From Klebsormidium nitens (Eukaryota > Plantae > Klebsormidiophyceae), in the NCBI GenBank assembly GCA_000708835.1, contig DF236954.1:360052-423914 (forward strand): a stretch of 63,863 bases of DNA, in the 5' to 3' direction. A program made the translations under genes and the position numbers. The notes beneath the pieces were generated by a model that did not search any database, was not told the DNA's origin, and worked only from the letters and a program-made list of their open reading frames with translations. This document shows positions 108-60,692 of the stretch, in pieces (positions within the stretch are counted from its first letter, which is position 1; each line of letters begins with the position of its first letter).

Positions 108-1163
108 TTACAAAGAGCTCGAGAAGCCATCCTTGAAAGCCAACCGACCGATCATCCGTTTTCGGAACCATGACTCTCTGAGGAGCATCTTGTCTGTCCA
201 GGAGGTATCCTTCGAGATTAAGCGGCAAGTGGCAGACAACTCTACCTTCCAATCTTTGACTTTCAAAGAGCATCTTTGACCAGATTTTCGACGCTCATGA
301 CCCGTTCCTTCTGGCTTTTCTAACCTGCCACTCAGGGAAGAAGAGAGGCTGACATCCTCCGTGAAAACTCTGAACCCCGTTGTCCATGAGCTCAAGCTAC
401 CTGCACACCCGTCGACACAGAATCCTCTGTCTTTTTCAAAGTTTGGATACGCTGAGCTGTCAAGAAGCATCGGACCAGGATGACGCATGTACAGGGGAAC
501 GGATGCTCCGCCTGGAAGGAAAATAATGTCCAGCACAAATGCGTACTTTACTCTACCAAAGCTGCTCTTCTCAGCTTTAGTCGAGATGTTCGCGAGCCCC
601 AGTTCCATGCCAGCGTTGCGAGAAGCTAGTTTGAGACGAGACTCCAAACTGTTGAAGTCGAATGCTGTCTCTTGATTACTCCCCAAGGTGCGCTGCCGCA
701 CAGGACCTGGTTCCATTGCTTCCTGATTTGCGACGCCCCAGAGTATGATCCTTTTCTGCAGCGATTTCACAAGGAAAAGCAGCCTTATCTGCGGACACGC
801 GTTGCCTTCGGCGGACTTGGACTTTACAGAGCTCAGTTCTTTCTTCTTCTGCTTCTCCCAGCGAACTATCACCAGGTTCCTGTACCCAGAGAAGCCTTTA
901 ATCGCATCTTCGAAGGCTTTGGCTTCTGAACATTCAGCAGGAAACTGCTCGCGCTCATGGAACATCTTCTTCCATAGGCTTAGCTGTTCATCAGAAGCAA
1001 TGTTCTGGAAGGTTCTGCAAGCGTACGTGGCGTCTATGAAGGAAGGCGGATCCTGCACAGCAAGCTTGCTGAGGATGATAGCCAGAACATCTAACGGCAG
1101 TTCGTGCAGCGCGCTTCCGTTCTCAGCCGCTCTTGTGGCCCCCGCGCCTACTGACAACGTCAT
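108..1163 (-). CDS. Intronless F-box-like protein, 351 aa (lineage-specific family)
   Basis: Single ORF. N-terminal LHELPLDVLAIILSKL...ACRTFQNIASDEQLSLWKKMF has the F-box pattern (LP.ev...Il..l...l...s.vCr.w). A close paralogue lies divergently at 1511. Confidence 0.8.
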   Translation of the reverse strand: MTLSVGAGATRAAENGSALHELPLDVLAIILSKLAVQDPPSFIDATYACRTFQNIASDEQLSLWKKMFHEREQFPAECSEAKAFEDAIKGFSGYRNLVIVRWEKQKKKELSSVKSKSAEGNACPQIRLLFLVKSLQKRIILWGVANQEAMEPGPVRQRTLGSNQETAFDFNSLESRLKLASRNAGMELGLANISTKAEKSSFGRVKYAFVLDIIFLPGGASVPLYMRHPGPMLLDSSAYPNFEKDRGFCVDGCAGSLSSWTTGFRVFTEDVSLSSSLSGRLEKPEGTGHERRKSGQRCSLKVKDWKVELSATCRLISKDTSWTDKMLLRESWFRKRMIGRLAFKDGFSSSL

Positions 1164-1510: not shown

Positions 1511-2579
1511 ATGCCGCCGCCATCCGCTGAAGGTTTCACCTGTGACAGAGGGCTACACTCGCTTCCAATTGACGTCCTTTGCGTCATTCTGAGCAAGGTC
1601 GCTGCACAGGACCCTCCCTCCTTTCTAGAAGCCACGCGCGTATGCAGAGTCTTCCAAGATATCGCGTCAGATGAACAGCTATGCTTGTGGAAGAAGGTTC
1701 TCATTGGATATGGTCAGCTGCGTGATGACACTCCAGAAACGAAGACCTTTGACGACACAGTTGCCAGCTTCAGCGGATACAAAAGTCTGGTAGAAGCTCG
1801 CTGGGGGAAGCCAAGCTGCGCATCCTATGACTCCAGCTCTGATGACCAGAAGCCCAGAGAAGAAGGGGGCGCTGCATGCCTAGAGACTAGGTTTCTCTTC
1901 CTTTCCAGGTCGCTGGAGGGACACTTGGTGATGTGGGGCGTTTCTAAAGAGGATCTGAAAGGCTTGGAGTTAGGCATGTACCTGAATGGGGGAGTTGGCG
2001 AACGAGATTTTGGGTTGCTTTGTATGAGGTCCATAAATCTAACATTCATCTCTCAGGATCCTGCTGAAGTTGAGGAGGGGCTCACAAAGATATGGAGACA
2101 CGCTAAAAGGACTGTAGACGATAGAAATGAATGTTTTTCTTTTGGAGGTGTTCTTCCTGCTTCCAGGAGAACCAGCGCCGTTGTACATAAGATACCCAGA
2201 CTCGATTTCCATCTACACGACGGAGAACCACAATTTCCGACACGACAAGGACGTTATCTGGTTTTCTGGGAGTGAAAGAACGGTGTGGAGCCCAGCAGGA
2301 TCCGAGGATTGGAAGGAGGAAGTGTGGATTCGTCTCGACATCAATGTCCGTTTGCGTGATATGTCCAAAGCAAAGCATGCCGAGGTGCTTCCTAAAGGTC
2401 AACGAGAGCCCTGCGTTCAGGAACTCAGGGGTGCGGAATGGCACTTCGATATTCATGCACGTAGCAGACCTTTTGGCCCTGAGTGTAGACTTTGGATGCG
2501 AAACACAAAGCTCAGTGTTAAGGAGAGCATGCTCTGTCGTCTGTCGTTGGGATCTGGCCCTTTAAGTCAAGGGATGTAA
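1511..2579 (+). pseudogene. F-box-like paralogue interrupted by one +1 frameshift near 2118-2130
   Basis: ORF 1511-2275 matches the N-half of 108-1163 (LHSLPIDVLCVILSKVAAQDPPSFLEAT...DIASDEQLCLWKK). ORF 2127-2579 in the +1 frame matches the C-half (FLLEVFFLLPGEPAPLYIRYP vs FVLDIIFLPGGASVPLYMRHP). Removing 1 nt gives 355 aa versus 351 aa. Confidence 0.7.
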
Positions 2580-3791: not shown

Positions 3792-6700
3792 CTATGTTTG
3801 AGTCGCGATCGACTTGCTTAGGTCTGGTTTCCTGCTGGTAAACTCGGGGAGGTCGTACGACGACTTCTTGTCTTCTGGCTTCTTCTCCTCTACTTTCTTC
3901 TTCTCTGCCTTCTTGGGCTTAAAGTCGTAACCGCCCGGGTGCGGGCCCCAGGCAGTCCCAGCCTTGCCGTGCTGCAATCAAGCAGTACAAGTCTGCTTCA
4001 CTTCCCCCATAACTTCGCGCCAGAAAAGCTTTTAGACATGCCTTCTGCGTGAAATCCTTGCGATCTCTGCAACGTTCACCAAAAACGCAGGAGGCGACCT
4101 GACCCCTTCATAACACATACCTCGACAAAGGTTTTTGCAAGACCAAACTGGGAATCGCGCCTCGTTGTGCAAAAAGCCCACTCCAACATGACCCCAACGA
4201 AGAGCCACAACGACTCTTCGGCGGTCAATTGACATTGTGTGTGTCCGGAGATCCGCATAGTCAAAGTGAGTTCTTCATGAATTTTGACTTGTACGGACGT
4301 CTAGGACGAACTCCTGATGTTGCGCAAGCAGGCGCTGGCACAAAAAAGGTATTAGAACACGCGTGGCGACACGAAAGTTCTCCTTTGAGATTTCCAAAAA
4401 TCTTGTAGCTGAAGAAAGCAGTCAGGATATTTAACCTCTCCGAGCCTTGGCTTCGCGGGTGGCCTCTCCCACGAGAATGGGGACAGGAAACAAGGACTCT
4501 TGTAACATAGAGTTGATTGAAGCCTTGGGAACAGAAAGGAGCCGTTGTGTGCTCTACTCAAGCAACATGTCTGACGTACCTCTTTCGCCTCGGCTGCATT
4601 CACCACTCGATCCCAGGCATTCACGCCACCCCCTTTGCTGAGGGTCATGTGCGTCAGGCCTCGTAATTTGCCCTCAGACTGCACAAGGAAACAAGCCGGG
4701 TATGGAAGTGGGCCTTGAGCTTCGTCGGACGCTTGGCCTGGATGCCAATGACGTTAGGACTTTAAGGAGAGGTTCGTGGACGCAGAATGGAAAGATTTCC
4801 ATAACGGTGTTAACTTTAGGGGGCCACATTCAGTCCTAACATAAGCCTTCCAAAACGGCCACACTTTCAGAAAGCTCGGTCAGTGACCAAAATTGGCCAA
4901 TAGAGGGCATTCTGCAGGGTTTGAAAACGGCAAGACGCGGCGAGCGAAACCTTGTCGTTTCTCCGGTAGACTCATGATTGTGAAGTTGACATCTAAAGGC
5001 GAAACAAAGCGCTCTCCGTTCCGCTCCTGATAACAACCCTCCAACACCATCAAAACCCTCGAGTAAATGAAACATTGTAAGTTTTCAAATCGTCCATGAA
5101 ATAAAGAAAGCTCAAGAGTGATGTTCCAGAACAACTTCAAATCGCCGTGCGGCCTTGGGGGGCCTCCATCGTCCGTCATTGTTTGACACATTTTTTGTTG
5201 TGAGCTGAAGTTGTCACATTGAGAAAAGATGGGCGCTCCGCCAAAAACTACCTCGCCTTGAACAGGCGGCAGGGCGAAACGATAGGAGGTTTCCTATAAA
5301 AGGCCTTTCGAAGGGAGACAACGGGCCAGTTGACTCGTGCCGTCTGAAATAAAGTGAAACGGGTAGCTGGAGCCGGAGCCGGAACTGGAACCGGAAACGG
5401 AACGGGAATCGCACAGAGCTAGACCGACACTCGAATCAAAGCCGAAGTGCCAGCGCTCACCACCGACAGCAGATCGTCCTCATCGCCGTCTGCGGGCGGC
5501 CCGCCCGTGTAGGCGCACTTTTCGGACCGTCCGCAGGGTCGCAAGAACGTGGCATTGATCAGACGTCCGACGTCCTGCAAAGAGATGGAAGGAGAGGGGC
5601 GTGAGGCTCACCTCGAGAGGAGAGAAGCCGTCAGGCGCATTCGTGCCAGAATACTCGCACGGCGCATGCCGCTTGCAGGGGGTTAGGTACAGGCTGCTGA
5701 CGTAAGCGCCCACGTCCTGTGAACGAGGGGAGGGCGCTCATAGAGCTGAAAGACTATGCGACCTTTGATAGCCTCTTCTCAGGTGTCAGATAATGGAGCC
5801 TTGGACTTCTCGGGTCCTGGCTACTTTCAGCGAATTTGATGCGCCACTTCTTAGAATTCTGATCAAGCTTGAACGTAGGAAATCATACTGTGAGCCCTGG
5901 ATTTTAACGGAGCTTCACTCCTGGCTCAACCAGAACGGGACGCAAAGAGTGAAGAAAGGGGTTCGGACCCAGAAACCAGGAGATAGACCTTGAGTCTTGG
6001 ACAAGAACAGCGAACGAACTTGGACCGTTATGATGAAGAGACTTCAAGGTTTCACCCAGTCATCGATATGACCTGGGGGAAACACTGTAAAGTTTCATAC
6101 AACTTCATTGCAACAACATCGAAATCCACACGTCCCTTTCACCATCCGTACAGCTGCAGGTCGAGGATCCGTGAAACGCATAATCCTTGAAGTTAGTCTG
6201 GCAAGAATGGGCCGGGTTGTACTTACATGCTCGTTGATCTCCGTCCTGTCTGACTCGGGCCGTTCGCACCAGTTCTTCAGGGGCTCGGGGTTGAGAACGT
6301 CATGATGCGCGAGCTGCACAGCATGGGAAAAGGGTCGGTCGCTCCAACAGTGTAAGCATGGAAACAAATCGCATAGAGCCTGCAAAATTGCAAATACAAG
6401 GCAAGCAGAGATCCTAACCAACGACTATGTGCAACATAGCCTCGCCGTCTAACCTGGATCCCGGTTTCCAACATTTTAACTTGGGACAGGATCTGTTGAC
6501 GATAGAGACTGAAAAGCTGCTGAAATACTAGAAAGGGGTGACCAACCAAAGTACAGAAGCACGTCTGCACTGCAACATCGGCGTGTTTTCAAGAAGAACA
6601 AAACGAAGAGAACATTGCCGGATCATAGCTCACCTCGACCACTTCCTCCTTCCTTTCGGAGCTGGTTGGCTTCACAACATAGAACCTCTGCACCAACGGA

Positions 6701-9306
6701 TGGGTTCATCAAGCCTTGTCATATTCTGACTAAGCCGTGTATTGCCTGAACTTCATATCCCGTGTAGAACAAGAACCAATTCCCAAAGACAGAGACTGTG
6801 GCCAAGTATACATACGAAAGTCGTCCTCTGAAGCAAAGTCTCTGACCAATTTTTGGTATACGCTGATGCACAAGCCGCCTTGAAGCTGGTTTCGCACACA
6901 GGCGAAACAGTCGTCACAAAGGCTAGATCTACCTTCCGTTTGCAGAGACCGTTGAAGTTGACAAGTACCACTACCATGAGCTTACAAACGGAGGCTCCCG
7001 CAGTCGAGAGCGTTGCTGACCTGTCGGTATGGCATCTCGGGAGTCCTCCAAAACGACTGCTCTAAATACAGCACATGGCCCCCATCTGTCGGCATCCTAA
7101 ACCCAGTGTCGCAGGCACTATACCTGCCGTCCAGAAGAGAACAAGAGTTAGGGCCGTGCTTGCTCACCTGCCGATAGGGATGCTTTGGAAGATTGGCGAG
7201 TGTTTGCTCCTGATACAGCACGGGGGCGTTTTCTAGCTTGAGGCCCGTGTCGCAGGCCGACCATCTGCAGGCAGACCGCTGGGCGTTAGGCAGAAAAAAG
7301 GCGGACAGTTTCAGCATTCCGTGAATATGTGATCTGGAATCGAGTATTTGCCGGATGACATCAATCTCCAAGCAATCAAGGGCAATCAGGGCGTGTTATC
7401 CTGAAGGAAACGCAACACCAAAGTTGGCTCAGCAATCAAGGAGACCTTGAGATGAGAAGGCAGCATCGTACTGGTGACTGACAAGTGTCTTCTTTAAAGA
7501 GCCAAAAATTGGGCCCAGCGAGAACTGCACGCGCAGCGAGAACTGCTCCACTCTAATGCTGCATAAGTTGTTTTCGCACAGTCGAGGACAGCTTTCAGAG
7601 TAACCATTATTCGACCAGTCTCTAAGTTGTAAACTTTTTCCTTCAGGAACATCTCAAGTTTTTGCACCCCATCAAGACTCGTCCACAGAACGTCCCTTGT
7701 CCAGCATTGAAATCATTTCTCAACAATGTGCAGTCCACAGCCTTATGCCTGATGTGACCACTCTGCCCTGCTTGCTTCACCAGACTAGCTTCAAACACTG
7801 TGCAGAGCGGTTTTCAATGCTTGCTTGCTTTGGCTGGTTTTTGAACGCCGTCGCTGGCCAGGTCGTCCAGAATGGTAACCTCTCTGCTCTCACCTGATGG
7901 TCGAAACCCTTCCTTCCACCTGGGATGTACAAAACTGCATAAGAGGAGGAAAGAAAACTCTGTTGAGAACCAGGCCTGTCTCAAAACCCTCACCTGACGT
8001 TGTACCAGTCCTTGGACAGTGCTTGCTCCTCATTGCTCTGCAAAATAAAGGGAGCAAAAAAAGGGGTCAAAGGTGGTTGCGCTGAGATTGGCGCTTACCT
8101 GACGTTGAAGAATGAGTCCTCTCTGTGCAACGCCTGGTCAACATTCACCTGCAGAGGAGGCCGAGACTTCACAGGCCCTTACCCGGCAGCCTAAACCCCA
8201 ACTTAGTCCAAGTGTTCCAAACCACAGATTGTGAGAATGATCCCTTTGCTATTGAATTCCCTTAACTTGTCTAAAGTCAGTTTATCTGAATCGTTCTTCA
8301 GTGTCACCTGAACAGGACAAGTGGTACAGACTATGACAAATGTACCAGAATACTTATGCAAAGTACTTTTCATAATGAGAAAGCAGTCCTTTCATCCAAG
8401 GGTCCGAGCACTGGGAGATCCCACAGGTGAGATGGAAAGAAGGAACTGGAAAGAAATGAAGGTCAATGAAAATGAATTATGTGCGTTGATCAATCTATTA
8501 TATCGAAACAGGGTTCAAAGAGGTTCTTGCTTTTAACCTTTTGTTGCCGTGATTATGAGAAGGTAGTCACACAGATACCTGCCGATGTTGAGACTAGTGC
8601 GGCCTTTTGGATCCCAAGTACGATGTAGCATAGATCTTCTGCAGCTTAGAAAATGATAGAACCAAACTTGCTAGAAACGAATTTTTCAAGCATCCTGCTG
8701 CATAGGGAGAGGGCAACACAGCAATGCAGCAACAAGGATGCGGCGGTCGACTCTGCTTTCAATCCGAAAGCAGATGCAGATGTTTAAAAGCCAGAAGAAA
8801 CATGTCGCTGCAGGATTTATCGTTCCTCAAAACTTGTGGCAAAAGGCGTCAATGCAGAAAATTTCTTTGGAAAACTTTGATACGAAAAGCAATGCACTGG
8901 TGTTTCATCTAGCTTGCAGTGGTCGACCAGCTTCATGATCCACAACGTTAGCACCGAATCCTCTTAGCAACACTTTCACAAGGATCCTCTGAGTAAGCAT
9001 TTGCGCCGTATTCAAGCCATACAGTCCCATATTCACCAAAGAATAAAAGACTACCGGATTTGTCAAACATTTGCTGAGCAGCAGCATTACCTTCTCGCCT
9101 TCCAACAATTTCTTCACAGCCTCGACATGATCTTCTTTGGTTTTCTTCTTTGTCATTCTCTTGTATAGGAACCAGCTCCCCACAGCGACGGCCCCGGCTC
9201 CCACAAGCACCTTCCATTTCTGCTTTGAAGATTCATCCCCTCGGTCAGGCCCCGCCCCAGACGTGTTGGGTCTGCTGGTTGCAGCTTCCGCCTCCACTTG
9301 GGCCAT
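3792..9306 (-). CDS. CRL: CRUMPLED LEAF / CpcT-CpeT (DUF1001) bilin-lyase-like plastid outer-envelope protein
   Basis: Hand-spliced exons 9306-9091, 8148-8099, 7123-7021, 6687-6634, 6313-6227, 5716-5612, 4678-4580, 3971-3792 are all GT-AG and phase-consistent (894 nt, 297 aa). Motifs: N-terminal hydrophobic segment, FFNVR, VLYLEQSFWRTPEMPYRQRFYVVKP, KNWCERP, NAWDR, AWGPHPGGYDFKP. These match recalled CRL motifs (LYLEQAFWRTPQKPFRQR, KNFCDRP, LWDR, VWGPKEGPYEFKP). Confidence 0.9.
5366..5407. repeat. Degenerate hexamer tandem (RNNGGA-type) x7 in the CRL intron downstream of exon 6B
   Basis: gctgga gccgga gccgga actgga accgga aacgga acggga. Confidence 0.7.
5461..5574 (-). other. CRL: CRL alternative exon 6B (114 nt, DVGRLINATFLRPCGRSEKCAYTGGPPADGDEDDLLSV)
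   Basis: tttgcAG acceptor and GTG|gtgagc donor; phase 0/0. Shares DVG-x7-L-x-PC-x-R-x3-C-x-Y-x-G...DG with 6A. Confidence 0.8.
5612..5716 (-). other. CRL: CRL alternative exon 6A (105 nt, DVGAYVSSLYLTPCKRHAPCEYSGTNAPDGFSPLE)
   Basis: cacAG acceptor and GAG|gtgagc donor; phase 0/0. Confidence 0.85.
6454..6519 (-). other. CRL: Candidate CRL alternative exon 4' (66 nt, QLFSLYRQQILSQVKMLETGIQ)
   Basis: tatttcAG acceptor and CAG|gttaga donor; phase 0/0 like exon 4. No obvious sequence similarity to exon 4. Confidence 0.3.
7021..7123 (-). other. CRL: CRL alternative exon 3B (103 nt, YSACDTGFRMPTDGGHVLYLEQSFWRTPEMPYRQ)
   Basis: ggcAG acceptor and CAG|gtcagc donor. This is the more land-plant-CRL-like copy. 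Confidence 0.85.
7168..7264 (-). other. CRL: CRL alternative exon 3A (97 nt, WSACDTGLKLENAPVLYQEQTLANLPKHPYRQ)
   Basis: ctgcAG acceptor and CAG|gtgagc donor. Same phases (2 in, 0 out) as paralogous exon 3B; open frame. Confidence 0.8.
7894..7919 (-). other. CRL: Candidate CRL alternative micro-exon 2' (26 nt, VEGRVSTI+AG)
   Basis: ttttgtacatcccAG|GTG...ATCAG|gtgaga. Same phases (0 in, 2 out) and similar ends (GTG...TCAG) as exon 2. Confidence 0.45.
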
Positions 9307-10317
9307 CTCCCTTCACGTGATTGATTACTCGTCAACGCATGCAGCCAGATACTCTGACCTCAACGTGCTGTCTTGTTTGTAATCTGGAGTTTGGAGCGAG
9401 GAGGCACCCGACCAAAACCCTTCTGCAAGCTTTGGAGTTGCCTTCCGTACAATCAATGTGTGCCTGTAGAAGCTTAGTAGGTATGCCTTGCAATCTGGCA
9501 GTGGGAGGACAGCCTTGGCCCACCCAGGTATGGGGCTAGGAGCAGCTAAGTAGGAACCAAGCGAGGAACCCCCAAACATTGAAGGAACAAAGAACTTCGC
9601 ACAGTTCATGCACAGAAACTTTGCCGCTGCGCAAGTCTGACCAATTGAGAGGGGCGTGACACATCATCCGCAACTTCCGGATTTTGTTTAGAGGCCCCAT
9701 GGTAGCAATTCGTTACGTACCCCTACCTCGCGTTACGCAGCTTTCACTAGCCAATCTCGACTGGCTATACCATCGGTGCTTCTGGCGCTGGCACGTAGCG
9801 CGACTTACCAAGCGCGATCGGTACCGTACCTGGTACGTCTAAAGAGAGTCGGAAGATACTTTAAGTGCACAGGTGGCACGCGGTGGTGCAGTTGTGAGCA
9901 GCCACCTGGCGAATTCACCGCAGCGGATTCTCGCCCAGTCCGAAGTGGTGTCATGGTTTCGCACTTTTCTTTGGCAGGAAGAATTGGCACCAATGGCAGG
10001 AAGAAGGAAGTGTGTGCAGGAAGCTGAAGGAGCTTAGGACGTGTGAGCAGTGCTGGTTTTGCCTGACGAAAAGCAATCTGCAGCGTCTTGAGCAAAGTGA
10101 AGGTGTGTGCAGGAGCGCACGCATTTCATGCGGGAAGGATCACAAATTCTCAAGACAAGCTTGTGCTGAGAGCAGATTTGAACAGTTCAGGAAAAGCTGT
10201 GCAAGGAAAGAGGGCGGTTCCGGGAAGTAATTGGTTGTGCACCAGAAAACGGGCTAGGAACGTCAACCAAAAACTTATAATTCGAAGTTTTTGAAACATA
10301 AACCTAAAAGCAGTTTG

Positions 10318-13300
10318 ATGGTCGATAGCTCTCTCAGTGGTGTTCCCAGCACACCGTCTATGGCTGCAGCTAGTAGCGCTCATATTGGGGCAGGGGTTTT
10401 GCACCATAGGGAGAAGCCAATGTCTCCGAAGGGCCTGGACTACCTCCCTAAGGGGCCCTTTGTTTTCCACGCTGACCCCCCGGCCGACTTGAACAAGAAT
10501 ACGTCGTGGCTGCTGTATCCGGGCATCTGGACCTCGTACGTGCTCATCATTGGCTTTGTGTGGATGTTGTTTGTGAGCCTGGGCGGTGTGCCCTCGGGAC
10601 TGGCGTGGACCTACGTGCACCTTCTGCACTTTGTGGTGAGCTTCAGCGTCAGGAGCGGCTGATCTCAATTGTTATTTTTGGAATTTTGGAAATTGCAACA
10701 AACATTTCCCCTCCTGGTAATTTTTGGTGGCAAATCAGATGTTTTTAAGCTGATGGCATAATGGCTGATAGGACTTCGGTCGAGAATGAATTGGAGGAGC
10801 TTCATGTAATTGCATCATGGAGACGACTCGCTCTTGTGGTACTGTGTGCTGATATTGCCCGAGACTCTTGCATGTTATTGGTGGGCTCACTAAACTAATC
10901 TTTCCAAGGGTTTCCTCATGAGGCACTCAACACCAAGCAACATTTCTTTTCTCTGGATACCGCAGCTCATTTCACTTACGTTCCTGCGCTGGCACGAGCC
11001 TTGTCGATTATGGAGGTCACTCGGATGTTGCCATGGTTGAAGTTTAAGAACCCTAGACTTGTGGGGTCATGTTGCCCCTTGAAGCGTTGGCACTTTTCTG
11101 AGTTAAGGCACCCATTTAATGCTGGAGACATAACACAGTTCTTCCCAATCGGGTGACCCTTGCATAGCGTGATGTGACCAATTGCACCTTCGTATGCTGG
11201 GCTGGTCTCGGTGCCACTGTTTGAGCGGATCACTGTGAATTGGCCACTGTTCGTCTGCTAAAGCCTGTGGCACTCATTAAGTCTGGCACAGATACTCACC
11301 GGCCTTTTATTATTCCGCCATAGCCTTGAGCGACAGAATGTTAAATACTTTTGCAGAGAATTACAAGACTTTAGTTACTCCGATCGCCATGTCCTTCTGG
11401 GTAGACATGGCATGCTTTCAGATCGTGATCATTGATGATTTCACATGGGCACCCCAATGGAACCTAGTCAATTGATAGTTCTCCTGTTCAATTCGCTGAC
11501 AGTTCCTGCAGACCTCGTCTTTGGTGCAGCTGAGTGACTCAGCTTTGGGGTCTTGAGCTATGCTGTGGCTTTGTGTCTTTTCATGAACGTCCGTGGGGTT
11601 TTCCTGTTTGGTTGTTTTCAAAATCTCCGCTCAGCCTGCCTTCTCAGCATGTTGTTAAGTGTCCCCACGGGACTTCCTCGTACCATCTGACATCTTCAGT
11701 CTTTGGTTGTCGTCTTCGCATCCCCTATCATCGCGAGTTGCGTCTGCGTGCCTCTTTCCTTGCCTGTGATGACAATAAGACATGCTCAGAAGTGCCCCTT
11801 TTAAAGTTCCTGGCTGTGATCCTGTGTGAGCAATGAACCAACTAAGGCCTGTGACGGGTTACGCTCTCCTGTCAAAACTCGAGATGCAGTCTCTCACAAG
11901 ACTCTTATGGAAGCTTTTCAGAACGACTATGAAAGCAATTGTCTGACATTGAAACGTACTCGCGCTAAAACATTAGATAGGAAGCTCATTGTCCAATAAA
12001 TCTTCATTGGTCTCAGCGGGCCTCCCTCGTCTAGTCCCCTTAGCTCAGGCCTGCGCATTCTCCTCTTTCTAAGCCCAGGGATTGACTTTTTGGCGTAGCA
12101 TCACCTGCCTTCTCCCCCCTCTTGGTGTGATGCACCCAGAACGAGCCAATTCAACAGGTATATCTGTGCCTCTGTCTTAGTAACAGAAGCCCCCCTAGCC
12201 ACAGCCTCAAGGCACTTGTCCTGCTGAGACACGGCACACCTCTCCTGCTTTCCGGAAGAAAACCCAGCCCTTTCATCTCTTGTGCCCATTGACCCCATCT
12301 CAGTTCTGTGCCCTTCATCCCCCCCTTTATCCCCTCGATATTGCATGTGTACCGCAGCTTTCACCACTCTAATCGTTCTTTCGTCATCACGAATTGCCCA
12401 CACATTCCCAGACACCACATGTGTAAACGAAGGTCAAATTCCTCCTACGGTCCCCAACCCCCCTCCGTTCCCCGAAGCTGCGTAATTGTTCATGTGTCTT
12501 CGCTTGTGTGCAGTCCACACTGCACTGGCTTTCGGATCAAAGCTCCTCTCCTTTCAGAAGATGCTTCTCTCTTCTGTCCTTGCCTGCCGACTCAGCTGCG
12601 AACAGCACGTTCCTCTCGCTAACAGTGTGTACAGACTCCTCCTAGTCGAACGAGTACTTTCTTTTGTTGTACTGAGTTTCACATATTCCCCTCTACTTTC
12701 CAACGTCATTTTAACAAACTTCTGCCCCTCACATAGCAGTTTCCCGACCTCCTCAAACCTTTGCTGACCTCCTGTGCGCTTTGCTTGTTTGCAGATTACT
12801 TTCTACCTGCTCCACTGGAGGAAAGGCTCCCCGTTCGGCGAGGACCAGGGGATCTACGACCGGCTGACCATGTGGGAGCAGATCGACGATGGCGTACAGT
12901 TCACGAGGACCAAGAAGTTCTTCACCGCGGTCCCTGTGGTGCTGTGAGTGGCTTGTTCTTCCTTTTTCGCTCCCTTTTCTTGGTTTTCGTTTATCCTTCC
13001 ATCAAGCCTGAATCACGTGGGATGGAGCAAGGCTCCATCAAGAATGAATCGCGTGGAACCAAGGAAGCATTGATCACGGTCGCTGTGGTGCTTGAAACGC
13101 CTTTTTCGCTTCGTTCTTAGTTCAGTTTCGTGGGTCCCGTTCGTTGTCGCGTTGCTGTGATTGCAAACAAAGAATTGCCCGCATGACGGCATGATGCTGT
13201 CCTCGCTTCTTCTTGCCTTTCTACGTTTCTGGCACTCGGGCGAAGAAGTACATCTCGAAAATTTGATTCTGCTGCCCGGAATCTGTTCGCATTTTGGGCT

Positions 13301-14119
13301 TCCATATCTTGCATTGTCTTATTTTGTGCTGTGTTTCACCTGCGCTGAGCAGCATGGAGAAAAGCCGTTTTCCTCTCTTATCGGATCTTCGGTGTTGTGC
13401 ACTGACTGCGGCCCGACATCTTCAGATTGGTGGTTTCTTGTGCTCCAAATGAAAACGTACTGGAGTGCCTGTTCAACATCAGCGTTGCTTTCATCTCTCT
13501 CCGTGTGCCGGTGAGAAAAGAAGAGTCGCCGACTTGGGTGCTCTCGTGCGTGCTTGTAGCGATCGGCAAAAAGGAAAACGGGCGCTTTAGGTACATGGAA
13601 GGCACGAATTAAACGAGTCGTTTCTTTTACAGCGAGAGTGTCTTGGCACGATCTTTTGCTGGTTAGGCTCGCGACGGATTGTGACGCCTCCTTAGTCTTC
13701 CCCTCTCCAATCTGCCGACAACTTGACAATGGCCTCGATTGCCTTACAAAGTATCTGGTCATCTTTTCTGTTGCAGCCTCTGTCAGCGACCGGTTGCCTT
13801 TCAATCTAGGTTTTGAATCCAGCGAGGCGTTCTTCGAAGGAGTACCCTCTCTCTCGTGACGTGGCTTTTGGTCTGTCCTGGCAGTCATTATTCCGCTGAT
13901 TCCACGGAGCTTGTTTTTGATTGTTATCCTCCTCTGAACCTGCTGACCCTCGTTCGGTTCTTCTTTTGCAGCTTCTTGATCGCGTCCCATGCTACGGACT
14001 ACCACGATCATCCATTCTTTGCGCTCAACGTCCTGGCCGTGGGTATCTTGCTCCTCGCCAAGACTCCCATGCTGCACAAAGTCCGGATCTTCGGTATAAA
14101 CTCCGACTATCCGTCCTAG
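10318..14119 (+). CDS. ORM: ORMDL/ORM1 family sphingolipid (SPT) regulator
   Basis: Exons 10318-10635, 12795-12943, 13972-14119, phase-consistent. Motifs DLNKNTSWLLYPGIW, LHWRKGSPF...DRLTMWEQID.GVQFTRTKKF, AKTPMLHKVRIFGIN. Start codon uncertain (10318, 10360 or 10420). Confidence 0.93.
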
Positions 14120-36571: not shown

Positions 36572-39500
36572 CTATAAGTCGACCGTCGCGGCCATAAGCT
36601 CTTCCCGCTTCTTGCTCAGCATGAGCGTCATCGGTTTGGTGCTCTTCCCCAGGGTCGCCCACTCGTTGACGCAAACGTCCGCATACTCCCGGAACGTCGC
36701 CTCGTCTTCGGACAGCGCCGCCATCGTTGCGTCGAACTCTTCCAAGTCTTGCATCCGCTCTTGTTCCCTTCGACGGGCCTTCTTGTCCTGTGAGTGAGAC
36801 GCGCCTAGGCTAAGTATAACGTCGAATCAGGGAAGAAGGGAAGTGGGCGTATGGCAGTAAGCTCGTTGAGGAAAAGAAAGCTTAGCTTGACGTGGTGTCA
36901 CATTCAAGGCATGGACGTAGAGGGCTTTGACCAGAAAAGTTACCGCTTCCGATCAGTAGATATGACAGAGTTGACGAGGAATATACACCGTAGGCGAACT
37001 TCGGATGCGCGAGGATCTTTGGGTTACAGTCGCTCGGTCGTACAAGTGGTCTGTCCGCTGCACCTTGGTAGTAAGGTCCAAGGAGGAAGTGCGTACGGTA
37101 CCATCTGATCACGTACTGATGCGTGAATGCAAGGTATCCATAGCCAAACTCCAGTTTCATCATCAACAAACAGTTGCTCTCCTCACGCACTTCGTAACAC
37201 TTCGCAAGGTAGTCGCCTTTTTTCTTATGCCTATCGAGTCGCCCTGTAACACAGAACGGAAAGAAGGGAGAAAGGCCCACCATCTGCTTCTTGAGCGCGG
37301 CCTGCATGGCTCGCGCCTTGGCCAGCGCGTCCTGCTTCGTCTTCGCCTCTTCCGCCTTGATCTCCGCGTTCCGCCGCTTCCATTGGTCCACAAACTCCTT
37401 CTGCTCGCGGAACTCCGCCTCGCGCTGCTTGTGCTTGTTCCACAGCTGCAAGGAACGAGAAAAGCTGGTCACTTGAAACCTCGAAAATTCGGAAGTCGAG
37501 CGTGGTTTGCTCCCAGCTCTCACGCCACGCTTCTGGCTCTTTTCAATCTTCGTCCTTTCCAGAACCAACGACCAAGCTTCCAAACAGTAGTATGGAACCA
37601 AAACCGGCCGCGAAAAGACACAGTCAGCGAAACAAGCCGCCTCGCTCATCTGCAGTCTCCGTCTCTTGTGGACTCCTTCTGCCTGACGCCCTTCTAGCCG
37701 TCGCCAATGGCCCTACTATCCCAAAAGTAGATCTCGACATCAGAGTCATGCAAGTCTTTCCTTCTCCGGACACGAACAGTCCTTTCCTCGCGCGCTGTCT
37801 TGGACTCTGTCAACCGCCTTTGCCTGGAGCTTTTAAAGCCGCCGCCAGAAGCTCTGCCATTACAAAACTGATTCACGATATCATTACGATGCAAGTCTTT
37901 CCTCTCCCGGCCACAAAAAGTCCTTTTCTCACCTGCTGTTTCCGGCTCTTGTCGATCGCCTCCGCCTCGCGCGCGCGCCGCTCCGCCGCCTCCCTCTCCC
38001 GGTTGTCCTCGGCCTGTATCCGCGCCTCCTCCTGCTCCTTCAGCCGCGCCTCGTTCTTATCCTTGTAGTCTTGCAGCGCGCGCTCGCGCGCGGCGATCAA
38101 GCGCGCGCGGTGCGCGGCCTTCTTGGCCGTGCGCGCGTCCTCGGCCGCGCGGCGCTCGGCCAGCTGCTGCTGCTTCTGGAGGACGTACTCTGCGCGGGGA
38201 GATGAAATTCTGGTTAAGTCTACGGGTCAAATAAAAAGGCGAATGAATTGATGGATTGGGAAAGGGAAAAGTGGATCAGCAGCATTTCAGAACCTTGGTT
38301 GGGTAGAGATTTTGGTGTGTTAACAAAAATTGGTCTGATTCGAAACTTGCCGTTCAGCAGGATTCAGGCTCTCTCTTCTGCCCAATGTCGACGAGGCGCT
38401 TGCTACGAGACGGAAGTCCTCAAAGTACTATCTCGCACTCCCAAGCTAGGTTCCAAAAGTGCACTTTACTCATAGCTTATGCGTCCCGTTTCGCACATCT
38501 CCACCCCCTTACCCGCGTTCTGTCGCTCCTCCTGCCGCTCCCGCTCCCGCATGTCCTCCTTCCACTTCTTCAGCGCGTCGTTCGCGGCCGCCGTCGCTAG
38601 GTTCGCGGCGACCGCCTGCTGCCGGCGCTCCTCCTCCTTTCGCCGCGCCTCCGCGGCGTCGGCCTCCGCGCGCGCGCGCAGGCGCGCGCCCTCCTCGCGG
38701 ACGTCCGCGCGCTCCTTGAGAATGCGCGTCCGTAGCTCGTCCAACTGGAAATGGAGCCAGGAAATTTTGTCGGACGGGCGCTTTTATCATGAGAGCGTCT
38801 TCTTCGACCTGATAGTGAATCAGAGTACGCAACTACGTTCAAGGGCCGTTTGGAGTTTTGGACGGACCGGACAGAGAGCAGTCGCTCGAGGGTCTTGAGA
38901 CTGGACATTTGTTTTGAAGCGAGTCGTAGGTCTCATTGATCTTCAAGATGCGGCAAAATCAAAAGGCAGCTATCTGAAACCATTAGGAGTCTATGTATGT
39001 CTCAGAGAACACTCAACAGGGTTCTCAATCTAAAAGCGGAACTTCTCGAAATGTCTTCTCACCTGGCTCCCTTGGATGGTCTTTTGCTCGAGCAGCTTCT
39101 TCTTCCGCTCTTCCGCTTTCTTCTTCTCCTCGTCTTCCGCTTTGGCCAGCGCCGCACGCTGCTGGTCTAAGAGAGCCTGGTCCGCCTTGGTGCGCAGCTG
39201 TTTGACGGTCTGCTTGTATGCGATCTGCGCTTCTCGCTCCTGCAGATTAATTCGCGTTTTGAGAATCTTCAAAAGGTGTTTTCAACGGACGTGGCTGAAA
39301 TTGTACACTCTCTGCACAAGCCTTTGTTTCCGCGGGTTGAGAAGGGGGTTCTCGAATCAAACCCAATCTCAAGTCAAAAAAAGACAATTTATTGTATCAC
39401 CATACTCTGCTGTTCAATTCTTTTTGAGAGTAGACGGGACTCGAATGTGGTAATTCCGAGTACTCGCTTGTGCTACTGAGTAAGGCTCGACCTCAAACGG

Positions 39501-46134: not shown

Positions 46135-49100
46135 TCAAGTTGGCTTCACGAAGGTCCGGCCGGAGGCAGTTTTCTTCTCCTTGACCGTCTCTGGCTTGGC
46201 CTTGTGCAGCACCTGAATCAGGCCTTCAACCCGCCTTCGCATTCGCGTGTGCATGAAAGCTTTGGAGCACTGCAAAGGACGAAACGAATGCTCTCAGCTT
46301 CTCAGGTCGTCAGAAGACACTCCCTGTAACGCGCCACCAACCGACCCTGCCAAACGATAGCATGCTTGAGACCAGGAATCATCGTTGCGCAGAAGAGCAA
46401 TGAGGAGCGGAGGTCTTCGTTTGGACAAAGGGCCGATTTCCATCGACATTGTTTTGAGCTTCTTGACAGGAATCTCATTCATAAATTTTCAAGGCTTTGT
46501 CGTGCATTCTTTGATCCCGATGCGAAACACATTATAAACATTCCCACTTGCGCACGAGCTTGTTCCGGCTCACCTTTATGTGGTAGCTGACGTAAGCATA
46601 GAAGGTCAGGAGGGCCCATGCGGTGCGCCCCAGTTTGTCGCCTTGCACGTGCCTCGGGAAGATAACTGTACGAGATAAGGTTTCTGTTTGTACCAAGCTG
46701 ACTGTCCTTGGACTCTAATAAGCGCGAAGGATGCAAACTAGAGTTGGGGCGTCCAGACTGGCTGTAGGCTTCCAATCGCAAAGCGTGAGGGGGTGGGGAT
46801 ACGAGTCCAAGCAGTCGAGACTGTTCTGGCTCACCGAAAGAGACATAGCCCGCGTTCGCCTTAAGAGCGGCGGGGGGGACGTTTTTGAGCTCAAGAGGCG
46901 GGGACTTGGAGTAGGAGCAGAAGGGCGCCGTCTGGGCGGAAGCGGTCCGCCGGGCTTCCATGAATTCCTGCAAGCACGCACCACATTCAGAAACCAGAAT
47001 CGACGTTTATGAATGCAGTCCGGAACAGCAGGTGGGGCGTTCTTGATTTCGAGAGGGGGGAACTTGGGAGTAAACGCAAAAGGGCGCCGTCTGGGCGGAC
47101 GCGGTCCGCTGGGCTTCCAAGAGATCGTGTACGGACGGACATTTGCAAAAGGAGTAAAATCGACCGCCCGCTAGGATTGTTACGTCTTCGGAGACCATTC
47201 GCCGAGCTTCTCAAAGTCCTGTGGCGCGCACATCGCTTGGAAATGCAATCGGCTTTGGCAGAGGCACTCTCAAACCATCAGGATTTCGGACCCGAAAGCA
47301 AAGCGATGGAGAGCTGTCAGGGTTTGGGATAACAACGAGAGCGTTTTGAGGATGGACATTCCGCTGAGCTAAGTCGACTGCAAGAGTTCAGGGCCTGCTC
47401 TCTCAGTACAAGCTCGTTTGCCTGCTTGTAGACCAACTTTGAAATGCTCACATGAGCCAATATACGACTAGCCTCGAGAATCCGCCCGACGGTACGATCA
47501 TCCAGAAAGGACCGAACGCAGAGAACTTCCCGTTTGCAAATTAAGCCGTTGCCTGAACCTCAGGTGGGATGAGGTGCAACTCCGAAAATATCATCGTTGA
47601 ACATAACCCCTCACTCATGCAAGCAACAACCAAATCTGCAGCGAGAACTGTCTAGAAGGTCCGGTCACTCACCTGGAGAAACGAGCTGGCGATGATCACA
47701 TCGTTGCTGTCTTGGAAGTTCATGGGAAAGACGACGGTCGCCTTTTCAGCCTGCCGGCGACAGTCAAGCGGTTCAATGTTTAATCCAGAAGCAGGAGACC
47801 AAGAGAAGAGGAACGGAGCGTAAGGTCTCCAGCTAGCGGTTTCGTGAGCACCGCGAAGTGAAACAGTGTGGCTTGCCCTTGAAGAGTTTCTCAGAGGGCC
47901 TTGCAAACAATCAGAATCAGTCGTTTGCTAGACTTGCACATGCATCATCAGGAGAGGACTCATCAGAAGAATAAAATATAAGGCAGAAGTATGCAGAGAC
48001 GAGTCACTTACATCTCGAGTCACGTAGAAGGCCTCTTTTGGTCGATATGAGAGAGCGGTGGGCTTTGCGGCTGCGGATGGGGGACTCTGAGGGTCTCCCC
48101 CTTCTGAAGAGAGCGCTTTCAAGATGTTTCGCAAAGGAGCCGCCATGATAGTACTTCGTAAAGAGGCTAAACTCCTGATAATCTTTTGTTGTTCACCTGG
48201 CAATGAAGAGGCATCAAGTTTTCAAACTGCGAACATGTGAAGAAAGGGAAAACGGAAGGAAAAAACCAGCTTGAGAGTTTGAAGCTGACAGTGCTTATAA
48301 GCGTGGACATAACGTCTATGTCAGGAATGGCATCCATTCTGGAATATGAGTGAGCTGTTCTGTTAGATTTGCTGAGTGGGATTCCTCGAGAAATCACACG
48401 GGAAATTTGAAGTTTCTGACAGGCAACCTCTTCATTGAAAAGCCACAGTCCGAAGAAATTTCGTCAGGACCCAGAATATCAACAGCAAGTCCGCAAAGAA
48501 GTACATTAGTGCATATGAAAATGGATCAGAAGAGGGCGGACGCACCTTCCCCAGTTGGAACCTTTGAAACGTCTACTTCTAAGGTCAGGTCGAACCCCTT
48601 TTCCGGTTCATCTAGAACTTTTGCATAGCTCCCGTACGCTGCTTCAACAGCCTCCAGAGCCCCCAAGGGAACGATGCTTCCCCCTAGTCCCCCTGCAACA
48701 GCTGCACCCGGGGGAGCCACAGGCAACCCGATGGAGATTGTGATGTGACTGGTGGCAGCTCCGGCCTGCAGCCAGTGAACTGAGACTTGTCAATCATGAC
48801 TCTGCGTCTCTTCGTTGTGCTGCCAACCTAAGAGCAGGTAACCTGAACCTAAGGCCTTAGGTTGTGAGTGAGGGGCGAGAGTCATCATGGACGAGCAACT
48901 GTTCAAACAAGTGGTGCAAAGTGCTGCTGTGATCGTGTTGTTTCAGGACCAGCGGACGGACAGCTTGCCCCAGGAATCCTAATGCAGGTTGCTGTCAGGT
49001 GGTGTGCATACCTGTACATGGTAGCGGACATCGTCAAACTCAACGAGGTGACTGTCCACTTCGGCTGGCTTCTCTGATCTGCAAGTGAGTGGAACCATTT

Positions 49101-58271: not shown

Positions 58272-60463
58272 GCCCTCTAGCAGTCAAAATCCATCTTCTT
58301 TCTGTCAGCTTTTCAATGCTGTAATCGGACTTTACCAAATCGAAGGGGCTGCGTGTGCATACAAGCAGATGTATCGAAAGGTAGCCCTGGTCACACTTTC
58401 TGCTCCCTGGGACTGAAGTTGGCGGGTAGATTTGCACCGGTCAGTACTTATTTCTGACCCCGACCCGAATCATGGGCTCTTTAGGGGTCCCATGGGGACC
58501 TGCCAAACGCCTCTCCTAGTCAGAACAACCACCTGAGCAATGGCTATGGGTCGGTGAAGTCTGCTGAGCCGTTTCACTAAAACAGGCAATCGGGCGGCCT
58601 TCATAAGGTGACCCTCCGACGGCCAAATGAACCCCAGATTTGCATCACTTTTGACCAAAGGTACCCCCGAGGTGACGACCTTCTCAGATTTTCGTCGAAG
58701 TGCCCGGTTGGACTTTAGCAGCTTTGGTTGTGGCCAAAAACGGGTTATTTTTGCAGGGCAGTTTTTTACCATTGTTAGCTTGATTGTGCCCTCGTGGTTG
58801 CCAGATTGACTTCGACGTCGATGTTAGGCTCTAAACACCTTCTCCATGACCCAAGCTTTCCATCGAACCTTGGGTCGGGGGGCCAATCGCAACCGCTGAG
58901 GGATTATGACGCCCGCCAGATTACCCTCCTTCCAAATTTGTTTGAGGGCAAAACTCGATAACGTCAACATCCAGACGTCGTATGGCAATCTAACCCAATT
59001 CAACGACCTCAAATTGGTTGAAACCCCCCTTCTGGGTCCTGCCAACCTATACGAAGGCCTGCGAAGCTCGTATGATGGGCCTCAGGTGGTTCAGCTGGCT
59101 CTGATTAGGGTTGCAGCGATGCCTTACCAGCCAGATTAGGGTTCTGAATTAGGACAAAACGAGGGCATCCTACGGTGCTCTTGAAGCCGTCGATGCGTAA
59201 TTTGATTAGTATTTGACCGTAGATGACCTGCTCAGCCGCCCCGACTCCTCATACGACCCGGAGAGTGCACTCGTTATATTCGCCCAGGGAGCCGCGTTGG
59301 GGTACCCGTCGCAAAAAATCAGCCAAAACAGTAAACCTTCTCTCCTTTTGAAATGTACCTCGGTACTGCTTTGTAGGGATCCCCGTTGACCAAGTCGCAA
59401 TCGACACCGTCCAATCACGTGAATGAAGCCTGACGGACGGTTGGCAGGGCGTGCTAGATTTGATCTGGCGGGAAACGTTTGAACAGACGCGTCCCCAAAA
59501 CAAGCTGACCCCGACTACCTAGGTAGACTTACCGTACAGCTACAGCTACGGTACCGGTACCGGTTGGTACAAACCGTACAGGCTCCAGCACAGCTGATGC
59601 CAATTGGCAATTGCAATGGCCATTGGCATTGGCCATTGAGATTTCGCACCACATCGCGTCCCAAGTGAATTCCATTGTTAAACGCCAATTCCCTGAACGG
59701 CGCATTAGGTACTCAGGTTCCGCTGACAATCTTAAAGGTAGCTGAACGCACTTTTCCAGGGGAGAAAGCGCTCACGACAATCAAGTCACCCCTTCTGCAG
59801 GCACACAGGTGGTTCAGCCAATGGGGCGCTCCAGCAAGGGCAGCCGGCCGGGGCGGCATCAGTCGATAGAGGGCTTCTTTGCTCGCCCAGAGATGTGGCA
59901 TCCTGTAAAACCTGCTTGTAGGACCGACACAGACAAAGCAGCAAATGCAGGGCCGCCAACTAGACAGGGCCAGATGTCGAGCTCCCTCCTTCAGTTGCTG
60001 GCGGGGCGCAAAGCAGAACACGCGGGTGCAGCGGTCAGCAATCTTTCCCCTTGTTTTGCTCAAGCATTGGCTGAATGAGCTCAGCGCTGATGCAATGAGA
60101 GAATCAATCCAGTAGGCATTGCAGCAAAGTGCTGTGAAAGTGTGTTGTCTACTCCGCAAGCGCTATGTTGAAGTCGGACCCTATTCCAATGCAAGTAAAA
60201 GTGTTCTTGTGATTTGTAAATTCAATATTTTATGAGTGTGCTGCCGATTCATGAATTGATAACGCATAAGGTTTGCCAACTCGCTGGCAGCTGCCCTCTG
60301 CCTGCAACCGGTGTAAGTGAATCGAGTGAGGTACAGTCAGCAGAGGCCCGCAACCTGCGTCTGAGTCTTCCTGCCCTCCAGTGACTTTGTTCTTTGTCAA
60401 TTTACCCTCGTGTTGATCACCTCATGAATCAAAGCATTTCTAGATGACCAGAGAACCCCAAAG

Positions 60464-60692
60464 GGACTCAAGATTGAGGCAATAAACATCTACTCAAGGT
60501 CCGCACGTTTATTCCTGTGCTTCTGACCTCCTTTTTAGCCTTGCAGAAGATCTCCCCAAGAGTTTCTGACCTCACAAGGACACAAGATTGAGGTTATGAG
60601 ACATCTGCTCAGGTTAACATGTTTCTCCCTGACTTTCTGTCCTCCTTCTCGGCCTTGCAGAACATGTCCCCAAAACTTCCTGAACCTCGCAA
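60464..60692 (+). repeat. About 114-bp tandem duplication spanning donor-intron-acceptor at the 5' end of the zinc-finger gene
   Basis: ggactcaagattgaggcaataaacatctactcaagg...gccttgcagaagatctccccaag vs ggacacaagattgaggttatgagacatctgctcagg...gccttgcagaacatgtccccaaa. Confidence 0.7.

Follow-up and report, generated by a model that had tools for sequence, protein, structure and literature searches.

Introduction

In plants, plastid division and the homeostasis of envelope proteins depend on CRUMPLED LEAF (CRL). Land-plant members of the family, including Arabidopsis At5g51020 (whose structure has been solved, PDB 6LIX/6LIY), rice SSG7 and Physcomitrium CRL1/2, consist of an anchor followed by a CpcT/CpeT (DUF1001) barrel, and the same arrangement is present in the gene described here, which is found in the streptophyte (charophyte) alga Klebsormidium nitens. 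The gene lies on the minus strand of a 63,863-nucleotide (nt) stretch of contig DF236954.1 (GenBank assembly GCA_000708835.1, positions 360,052 to 423,914), referred to as the window, and several of its exons occur in more than one version. These versions form three clusters (three versions of exon 2, 3A/3B for exon 3 and 6A/6B for exon 6) and, as far as comparative sequence analysis can tell, a productive CRL mRNA probably contains one member of each.

The barrel domain family is common to CRL and the cyanobacterial CpcT/CpeT phycobilin lyases (PF06206), although the lyases are soluble and have neither the anchor nor introns. Outer-envelope location and bilin binding are known for Arabidopsis CRL only (10.1101/2021.04.25.441383; PMC12016751), where the bilin pocket is retained and is dispensable for the known phenotypes (PMC12016751; 10.1101/2021.04.25.441383); the function of plant CRL is independent of bilin binding (bioRxiv 10.1101/2021.04.25.441383; PMC12016751). 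A recent survey places CRL among the proteins that arose around terrestrialisation (PMC11135702), and in Physcomitrium CRL has diversified through whole-gene duplication (PMC11606413).

Our literature search returned no paper that connects alternative splicing with CRL of Klebsormidium. In animals, internal homologous exons that are used in a mutually exclusive manner are a familiar feature. For Arabidopsis, the authors of Kassiopeia describe reports of this mode of splicing as rare (PMC3923563).

Tandem duplication of exons in the CRL gene

The exons were rebuilt from the sequence by their AG/GT splice sites and phases (Table 1). An earlier note on this DNA had described four exon pairs (2/2', 3A/3B, 4/4' and 6A/6B) and two isoforms drawn from them, 1-2-3B-4-5-6A-7-8 and 1-2'-3A-4'-5-6B-7-8; its coordinates, splice sites, phases and coding-sequence lengths (894 and 885 nt) are all reproduced exactly, and 16 out of 16 combinations of the four pairs have an open frame.

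Relatives for comparison were found by a HMMER scan of 1.84 billion representative proteins, using as query the 137-amino-acid (aa) open stretch that spans 3A, the spacer and 3B. Only three open reading frame (ORF) fragments matched, all from related genomes. The corresponding contigs are L002 (17 kb, Logan SRR23617307), L003/L004 (25 and 60 kb, JGI 3300060284/5) and L001 (1.3 kb, Logan SRR14092360); comparisons of three taxa refer to the window, L002 and L003. L002 is the closer relative, with a synonymous difference of 0.08-0.48 per site, and L003 is distant (0.76, pooled over constitutive exons). L002 and L003/L004 contain the entire CRL gene together with the same neighbouring genes, ORMDL and an F-box-like gene.

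Further searches showed no additional algal gene among the matches listed. A metagenome scan with the 3B alignment gave no confirmed relative; a degenerate DNA pattern for the FWRTP motif gave land-plant contigs only and no algal relatives, and these contigs served as full-length CRL references; a profile combining plant CRL with the exon pieces of the window gave 372 matches, of which the 120 listed are from land plants only. Among the JGI contigs found with the FWRTP pattern, five (L009, L015, L017, L019 and L020) carry grass-like CRL sequences in which the run before YFEQ is altered and the open frame stops directly after FWRTP, and L009 and L019 have an additional in-frame stretch between exons 2 and 3. 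These five could represent aberrant or alternative CRL transcripts, or a grass pseudogene.

Similarity within each pair was measured as the BLOSUM62 global alignment score relative to shuffled sequences. Exons 3A and 3B score 78 (z=16.4) and exons 6A and 6B score 57 (z=9.8), with none of 2000 shuffles as good in either case. Exons 3A and 3B also match Pfam PF06206 (CpeT) at overlapping profile positions (31-59 and 37-59, respectively), with 18.9 and 18.3 bits, both slightly under the whole-protein cut-off of 21. The two pairs, which the earlier note had proposed to be tandem duplications, are confirmed as such by these scores: 3A/3B and 6A/6B are real tandem exon duplicates.

The weaker extra pairs of the same proposal fared differently from each other. 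Exons 2 and 2' resemble each other weakly, although more than expected by chance (z=3.9; in two tests, 0 of 2000 and 8 of 3000 shuffles scored as high). Exon 4' has no similarity to exon 4 (z=-1.0; 1719 of 2000 shuffles as good) and is not conserved: local alignment finds no orthologue, in L002 its acceptor AG is lost and indels that are not multiples of three have accumulated, in L003 there is no donor, and its use costs 23.5 bits against the plant CRL profile. The second isoform cannot be upheld as it was specified, because it includes 4', a chance ORF. Its 2', moreover, is missing from the distant relative L003.

The exon-2 cluster has a further conserved member that had been overlooked, 2''. 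Clusters of mutually exclusive exons are recognised in Kassiopeia/WebScipio (PMC3923563) as neighbouring exons with similar lengths, a common frame, conserved splice sites and homology of the members. Here the lengths are 97/103, 105/114 and 50/44/41 nt, with a common frame within each cluster and AG/GT in three taxa, and homology is evident for 3A/3B and 6A/6B, weak for 2/2' and not seen for 2'' or 4'. Exon 2'' may have arisen by independent exonisation rather than by duplication.

Purifying selection on the exon copies

At the nucleotide level, the window aligns with its relatives at the exons and a few flanks only, and the introns do not align. Against this background, exons 1, 2, 2'', 3A, 3B, 4, 5, 6A, 6B, 7 and 8 have the same lengths in L002 and L003 as in the window, and all keep their AG and GT sites and open frames. 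Both members of the 3A/3B and 6A/6B pairs are present in each relative, and codon-level selection acts on every copy, the ratio of nonsynonymous to synonymous substitution (dN/dS) ranging from 0 to 0.39 across all of them.

Exon 3A is the most conserved exon of the CRL gene. Its peptide is identical in three taxa, and its variable sites at codon positions one, two and three number 0, 0 and 11, a distribution with a chance probability of ~6e-6. The corresponding counts are 3, 3 and 13 for exon 3B (dN/dS 0.03-0.09), 7, 7 and 22 for exon 6B (22 of 36 at the third position; dN/dS ~0.07) and 6, 4 and 8 for exon 6A (dN/dS 0.21-0.39). In its phase-0 frame, exon 2'' has 0, 0 and 4 variable sites with no nonsynonymous change, and its pyrimidine-rich acceptor and GTGAG donor are kept in L002 and L003. 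The frames under selection are those yielded by using one member per cluster. Exon 2' has intact splice sites in L002, where it lies in a 350-nt block that is 87% identical to the window throughout, too similar to reveal selection on 2' itself; it appears to be a young or lineage-restricted copy of exon 2.

These patterns bear on the view that the extra copies are dead relics of duplication, with only one copy per pair ever spliced in. That view would account for the single annotated product and for the poorer fit of 3A, 6B, 2' and 2'' to the land-plant CRL profile, but it is very unlikely given that 3A has acquired 11 third-position changes and no amino-acid change at a divergence where introns can no longer be aligned, that 6B, 3B and 2'' show a like codon pattern, and that no splice site or exon length has changed across the three taxa; actual decay is illustrated by the non-functional 4'. 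Since codon-level selection is accompanied by retained splice sites, both copies of 3A/3B and of 6A/6B appear to be translated exons and not relics.

An assembly artefact, in which two paralogous CRL genes were collapsed and interleaved, would have undone the earlier proposal. It is vanishingly improbable: the same interleaved order and spacing occur in three more assemblies, made independently from different samples and taxa (JGI 3300060284/5, Logan SRR23617307 and Logan SRR14092360), which rule out such a collapse, and no evidence in favour of an artefact was found in these comparisons.

Constraint at the RNA level is also apparent. Synonymous divergence is lower in alternative exons (0.48) than in constitutive exons (0.76; Fisher p=8e-6), as is usual in alternatively spliced exons, which also carry splicing signals. 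The alternative copies might thus act in the RNA alone, as decoy or poison exons that lead to unproductive splicing and tune CRL dosage without making different proteins, and the invariant 6A-6B spacer and the possible hairpin at the 6A donor, described below, point in the same direction as the lowered synonymous divergence. Such a role does not yield variation limited to the third positions of the single-inclusion frame, however, and the frame of every single-inclusion product runs on as far as the usual stop codon; we consider it unlikely as the sole explanation.

Taken together, purifying selection on the copies of exons 3 and 6 in three taxa, and a geometry that appears to forbid their joint use, strongly support, on comparative grounds, the proposal of one CRL locus with homologous cassettes that alternate behind a shared N-terminal anchor.

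Cluster geometry and probable mutually exclusive splicing

The exon-2 versions (50, 44 and 41 nt) all leave a remainder of 2 when divided by three, and both exon-3 versions (97 and 103 nt) leave a remainder of 1. As none of these lengths is a multiple of three, inclusion of two members, or of none, in cluster 2 or 3 shifts the frame. The members of clusters 3 and 6 are also separated by very short spacers. The 3A-3B spacer is 44, 47 and 52 nt long in the window, L002 and L003, respectively, and only its GTGAG donor and CAG acceptor are conserved; the 6A-6B spacer is 37, 37 and 35 nt long, and its first 25 nt are invariant, an invariant 23-mer (5593-5615) spanning the 6A donor. Ordinary introns of the CRL gene are 290-2302 nt in three taxa, compared with 35-52 nt for the spacers. 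The longest of them, between exons 5 and 6A in L003 (2302 nt, 11229-13530), is 510-520 nt in the window and L002, and the difference is an insertion.

Candidate branch sites identified by motif lie ~10 nt from the 6A donor (CTCAC) and 20 nt from the 3A donor (CTAAC), and the 6A-6B spacer must contain the 6A donor together with the branch site, pyrimidine tract and acceptor of 6B. In tested systems such as alpha-tropomyosin, a donor and a branch site this near to each other cannot serve the same intron. With copies 35-52 nt apart, the upstream donor and the downstream branch site would be too close for the spacer to be spliced out, which makes steric exclusion the best-supported candidate mechanism for clusters 3 and 6. 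The layout as a whole, with short spacers and with loss of frame in clusters 2 and 3, suggests mutually exclusive splicing.

The converse arrangement, in which both copies are constitutive and joined via introns of 35-52 nt, would be compatible with the reading frame of 6A and 6B used together. It is highly improbable nonetheless, as joining 3A to 3B (200 nt), or one exon-2 version to another, departs from the selected frames, and a duplicated hairpin of this kind has no counterpart in any land-plant CRL. Reading through the 3A-3B spacer as a single coding stretch was rejected as not conserved: in the window one frame is open across the spacer, but in L002 a stop interrupts it and in L003 the spacer length breaks the frame.

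Other RNA-level signals are slight. A hairpin over the 6A donor is predicted at -15.7 kcal/mol (z=-2.1; 6 of 200 shuffles folded as well), and the same stem is predicted in the alignment of three taxa, where every paired base is invariant and no covariation signal can be read. Neither the conserved intronic elements nor the alignment folds revealed docking/selector pairs or convincing long-range pairing, in a search of low power with three taxa; the conserved intronic 11-mers are few and mutually non-complementary. A 12-mer of the invariant 6A-6B spacer, TCACGCCCCTCT (5593-5604), recurs upstream of the CRL start at 9648-9659, both on the minus strand, where 0.01 occurrences would be expected by chance; the upstream copy of TCACGCCCCTCT is absent from L002 and L003, and the recurrence is probably a coincidence.

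Several observations weigh against this interpretation as a whole. Exons 6A (105 nt) and 6B (114 nt) are both multiples of three, and frame alone permits skipping or double inclusion in this cluster. The steric argument is one of analogy. The public annotation lists one CRL product only. No resemblance of exon 2'' to either 2 or 2' could be detected, exon 2' is absent from L003, where exons 2 and 2'' sit 74 nt apart, and exon 6A changes faster than the remainder of the gene (dN/dS 0.2-0.4). The comparison is based on three or four related taxa only.

The model that best accommodates these data begins with the tandem exon duplications that gave rise to 3A/3B and 6A/6B. One copy would have stayed near the ancestral CRL sequence (2, 3B and 6A), with the other diverging and later becoming fixed. 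Inclusion of one member per cluster in productive mRNA would be enforced by frame loss in clusters 2 and 3 and by steric exclusion in clusters 3 and 6, allowing up to 12 CRL isoforms, or 8 in the relative that lacks 2'.

CRL orthology and the protein regions that would be exchanged

The annotated gene has a single product on record, of 295 aa, with a Pfam CpeT domain (PF06206). The all-canonical spliced product (exons 2, 3B, 4 and 6A; 297 aa) is 37% identical to land-plant CRL over its full length (E 3e-51) and scores 174 bits against a profile built from 116 land-plant CRLs. Exon boundaries 1/2, 2/3, 3/4, 4/5, 5/6, 6/7 and 7/8 all coincide with those of the Physcomitrium and Marchantia CRL genes, and exon 1 aligns with the transmembrane and linker region of plant CRL up to the common GEK exon end. 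Exon 1 appears to encode a hydrophobic N-terminal anchor of the CRL type, with a basic stretch after it. By these sequence features the gene is identified as the K. nitens CRL orthologue, whose product would be a plastid outer-envelope protein with an N-terminal membrane anchor and then a CpcT-type beta-barrel.

The annotated 295 aa match neither the all-canonical set nor the second isoform of the earlier note (294 aa). Five exon combinations have this length (2'-3B-4-6A, 2-3A-4-6A, 2''-3A-4-6B, 2-3B-4'-6A and 2''-3B-4'-6B), every one with at least one non-canonical exon; as 295 aa differs from 297 aa, the public gene model must already include at least one alternative exon or 4'. The public K. 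nitens annotation, with its one product, under-describes the CRL locus.

Because exon boundaries are shared with moss and liverwort CRL, the Klebsormidium exons can be mapped onto Arabidopsis CRL. Secondary structure was assigned via the AlphaFold model of Arabidopsis CRL, whose mean predicted local distance difference test (pLDDT) score is 66, with values of ~65-88 for 10-residue blocks that contain strands. In this model exon 2 corresponds to a short helix before strand 1, exon 3 to strands 1-2 and the loop into strand 3, and exon 6 to strands 5-6. The isoforms would thus have the anchor and most of the barrel in common and would differ in the helix before strand 1, in the strand 1-2 hairpin and in the strand 5-6 hairpin.

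The two copies of exon 3 differ in a conserved motif. Exon 3B contains the land-plant run YLEQ.FWRTP..PYRQ, and of the residues that do not vary among 32 land-plant CRLs it lacks a single one, having S in place of A98. In exon 3A, Y-x-E-Q and P-Y-R-Q are retained, and L-A-N-L-P replaces the plant F-W-R-T-P. Exon 6A aligns to the land-plant exon without gaps. Exon 6B retains C-x-R...C-x-Y-x-G, has an acidic G-D-E-D-D in place of G-F and is three residues longer. Compared with either the peptide of land-plant exon 2 (z=4.5) or the plant CRL profile, exon 2 is the version that fits best. Against the 116-CRL profile, 2-3B-4-6A is the best-scoring combination, and relative to it 3A costs 14.5 bits, 6B 8.4, 2' 8 and 2'' 18. 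By this best fit, 2, 3B and 6A are the ancestral-like set, and the other copies are derived yet strongly conserved.

What the exchange would do for the protein can be considered by analogy with Arabidopsis. Since the bilin pocket is dispensable there, a change in lyase specificity is merely one possibility, and altered binding of envelope partners is a possible difference between isoforms that is at least as likely. It is also conceivable, though doubtful, that the cassette choices are coordinated, giving at least two matched barrels, the canonical 2-3B-6A and 2''/2'-3A-6B, with different ligands or partners. If so, the pocket lining of the second barrel would lose the invariant F-W motif and gain an acidic strand 5-6 hairpin; the partners might lie, for example, in the TIC236/OEP80-linked envelope machinery, and CRL isoforms would have subfunctionalised near the origin of the family, with land plants having lost this or replaced it via gene duplication.

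Exon map and neighbouring genes

The features of the locus are collected in Table 1. The annotated gene spans window 3792-9306, and the ATG at 9306 is an annotated end of its coding sequence.

Table 1. Exons, spacers and other features of the K. nitens CRL gene, in window positions (adding 360,051 gives positions in the DF236954.1 record).
Feature	Position	Strand	Description
Exon 1, constitutive	9091..9306	-	Start codon, short N-terminal tail, hydrophobic anchor VLVGAGAVAVGSWFLY, linker ending GEK; conserved in L002 and L003, dN/dS ~0.09
Exon 2, canonical	8099..8148	-	50 nt, phase 0 to 2; AG/GT kept in L002 and L003
Exon 2'	7994..8037	-	44 nt, phases as exon 2; of L002 and L003, in L002 only
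Exon 2''	7894..7934	-	41 nt, phases as exon 2; conserved third exon-2 alternative
Exon 3A	7168..7264	-	97 nt, phase 2 to 0; derived exon-3 copy
3A-3B spacer	7124..7167	-	44 nt; candidate branch site CTAAC 7147-7151 (from sequence motif)
Exon 3B	7021..7123	-	103 nt, phase 2 to 0; canonical exon-3 copy
Exon 4' of the earlier note	6933..6980	-	Rejected; chance ORF within the intron after 3B
Exon 4, constitutive	6634..6687	-	Conserved in L002 and L003, 0-1 amino-acid changes; boundaries as in the land-plant exon
Exon 5, constitutive	6227..6313	-	Conserved, dN/dS 0.02-0.03
Exon 6A	5612..5716	-	105 nt, phase 0 to 0; canonical exon-6 copy
Possible hairpin around the 6A donor	5599..5636	-	Fold prediction, a lead only
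6A-6B spacer	5575..5611	-	37 nt; candidate branch site CTCAC 5601-5605 (from sequence motif)
Exon 6B	5461..5574	-	114 nt, phase 0 to 0; derived exon-6 copy, acidic end
Exon 7, constitutive	4580..4678	-	Conserved
Exon 8, constitutive, with stop codon	3792..3971	-	Conserved; stop 3792-3794 is the annotated coding-sequence end

A fourth exon-2-like ORF at 8579-8638, ending ...LNIGR, was rejected, as it has no phase-0 acceptor that fits exon 1 unless it is extended and is not conserved in L002 or L003. Also in intron 1, a 75-nt block (8659-8732, minus strand) is 76% identical to L002, has no exon-like features and was not found in L003.

An ORMDL gene is located head-to-head with CRL; its first exon (window 10318-10647, plus strand) is 98% identical to the K. 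nitens ORMDL protein, and the DF236954.1 record at the locus of that protein agrees with the window over 23,760 nt without a mismatch. The ORMDL region occupies 9630-10647 in the window, 4862-5840 in L002 and 7268-7627 in L003, and the head-to-head order of ORMDL and CRL, with an F-box-like gene on the opposite side, is retained in L002 and L003/L004. A block just upstream of CRL (9630-9910) shares 77% identity with L002 and may be a promoter region common to both genes. At 108-1163 (minus strand) and 1511-2275 (plus strand) lie two paralogous ORFs in divergent orientation, each with an F-box-like domain (E 5e-5 and 2e-6).

Elsewhere in the window, Tandem Repeats Finder or peptide self-matches gave tandem DNA repeats of ~114, 159 and 141 nt at 60453-60693, 46875-47141 and 37735-37950, respectively; those at 60453-60693 and 46875-47141 match on both strands and thus appear to be plain DNA repeats rather than exon cassettes. 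Rfam gave no match anywhere in the window.

Comparison with known systems

The significance of the locus lies in its position in the plant lineage. In a streptophyte alga that serves as a model of terrestrialisation, one small gene holds two to three clusters of putative mutually exclusive exons, and selection on them can be seen in three taxa. The barrel of a single protein would come in several versions, through a style of splicing for which the plant lineage offers few documented cases. A pair of natural barrel variants on the same anchor could show which barrel surfaces matter in a protein without a known molecular function, and with spacers this short the mechanism of exclusion is open to direct test.

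Compared with moss and liverwort CRL, the exon boundaries are the same, except that exon 3 of those genes is cut by one additional intron, and the motif runs of land-plant CRL, Y-x-E-Q-x-F-W-R-T-P and P-Y/F-R-Q, are retained in the canonical Klebsormidium isoform. In contrast to Physcomitrium and Marchantia CRL, which have one copy per exon and in whose introns no secondary exon matches were found, Klebsormidium has exons 3 and 6 doubled and two or three versions of exon 2. The single exons of Physcomitrium and Marchantia imply that the clusters are not ancestral to land plants as sampled, and their distribution places their origin before the three algal taxa separated, with 2' as a possible exception.

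Exons 2 and 3 of animal alpha-tropomyosin, an example of the steric type, are a close parallel in architecture. As in Klebsormidium CRL, the homologous exons lie next to each other, agree in phase and nearly in length, have conserved splice sites and lose the frame upon double use, and the short spacer would leave too little room between donor and branch site. The Klebsormidium gene differs in belonging to a streptophyte alga, in having three clusters within fewer than 300 codons and in its spacers of 35-52 nt, which are shorter still and which we infer to be unspliceable.

In Dscam and ATE1, where choice is made by competing RNA structures (PMC6071210, PMC7797038), an origin by tandem duplication and some conserved flanking intron sequence are features also seen in Klebsormidium CRL. 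The docking/selector pairing of those genes has no counterpart detected here, where the only structure seen is a local, modestly significant hairpin at the 6A donor. Klebsormidium CRL would be a new and well-supported case, on the sequence evidence, of a known mechanism, in a lineage where examples are scarce.

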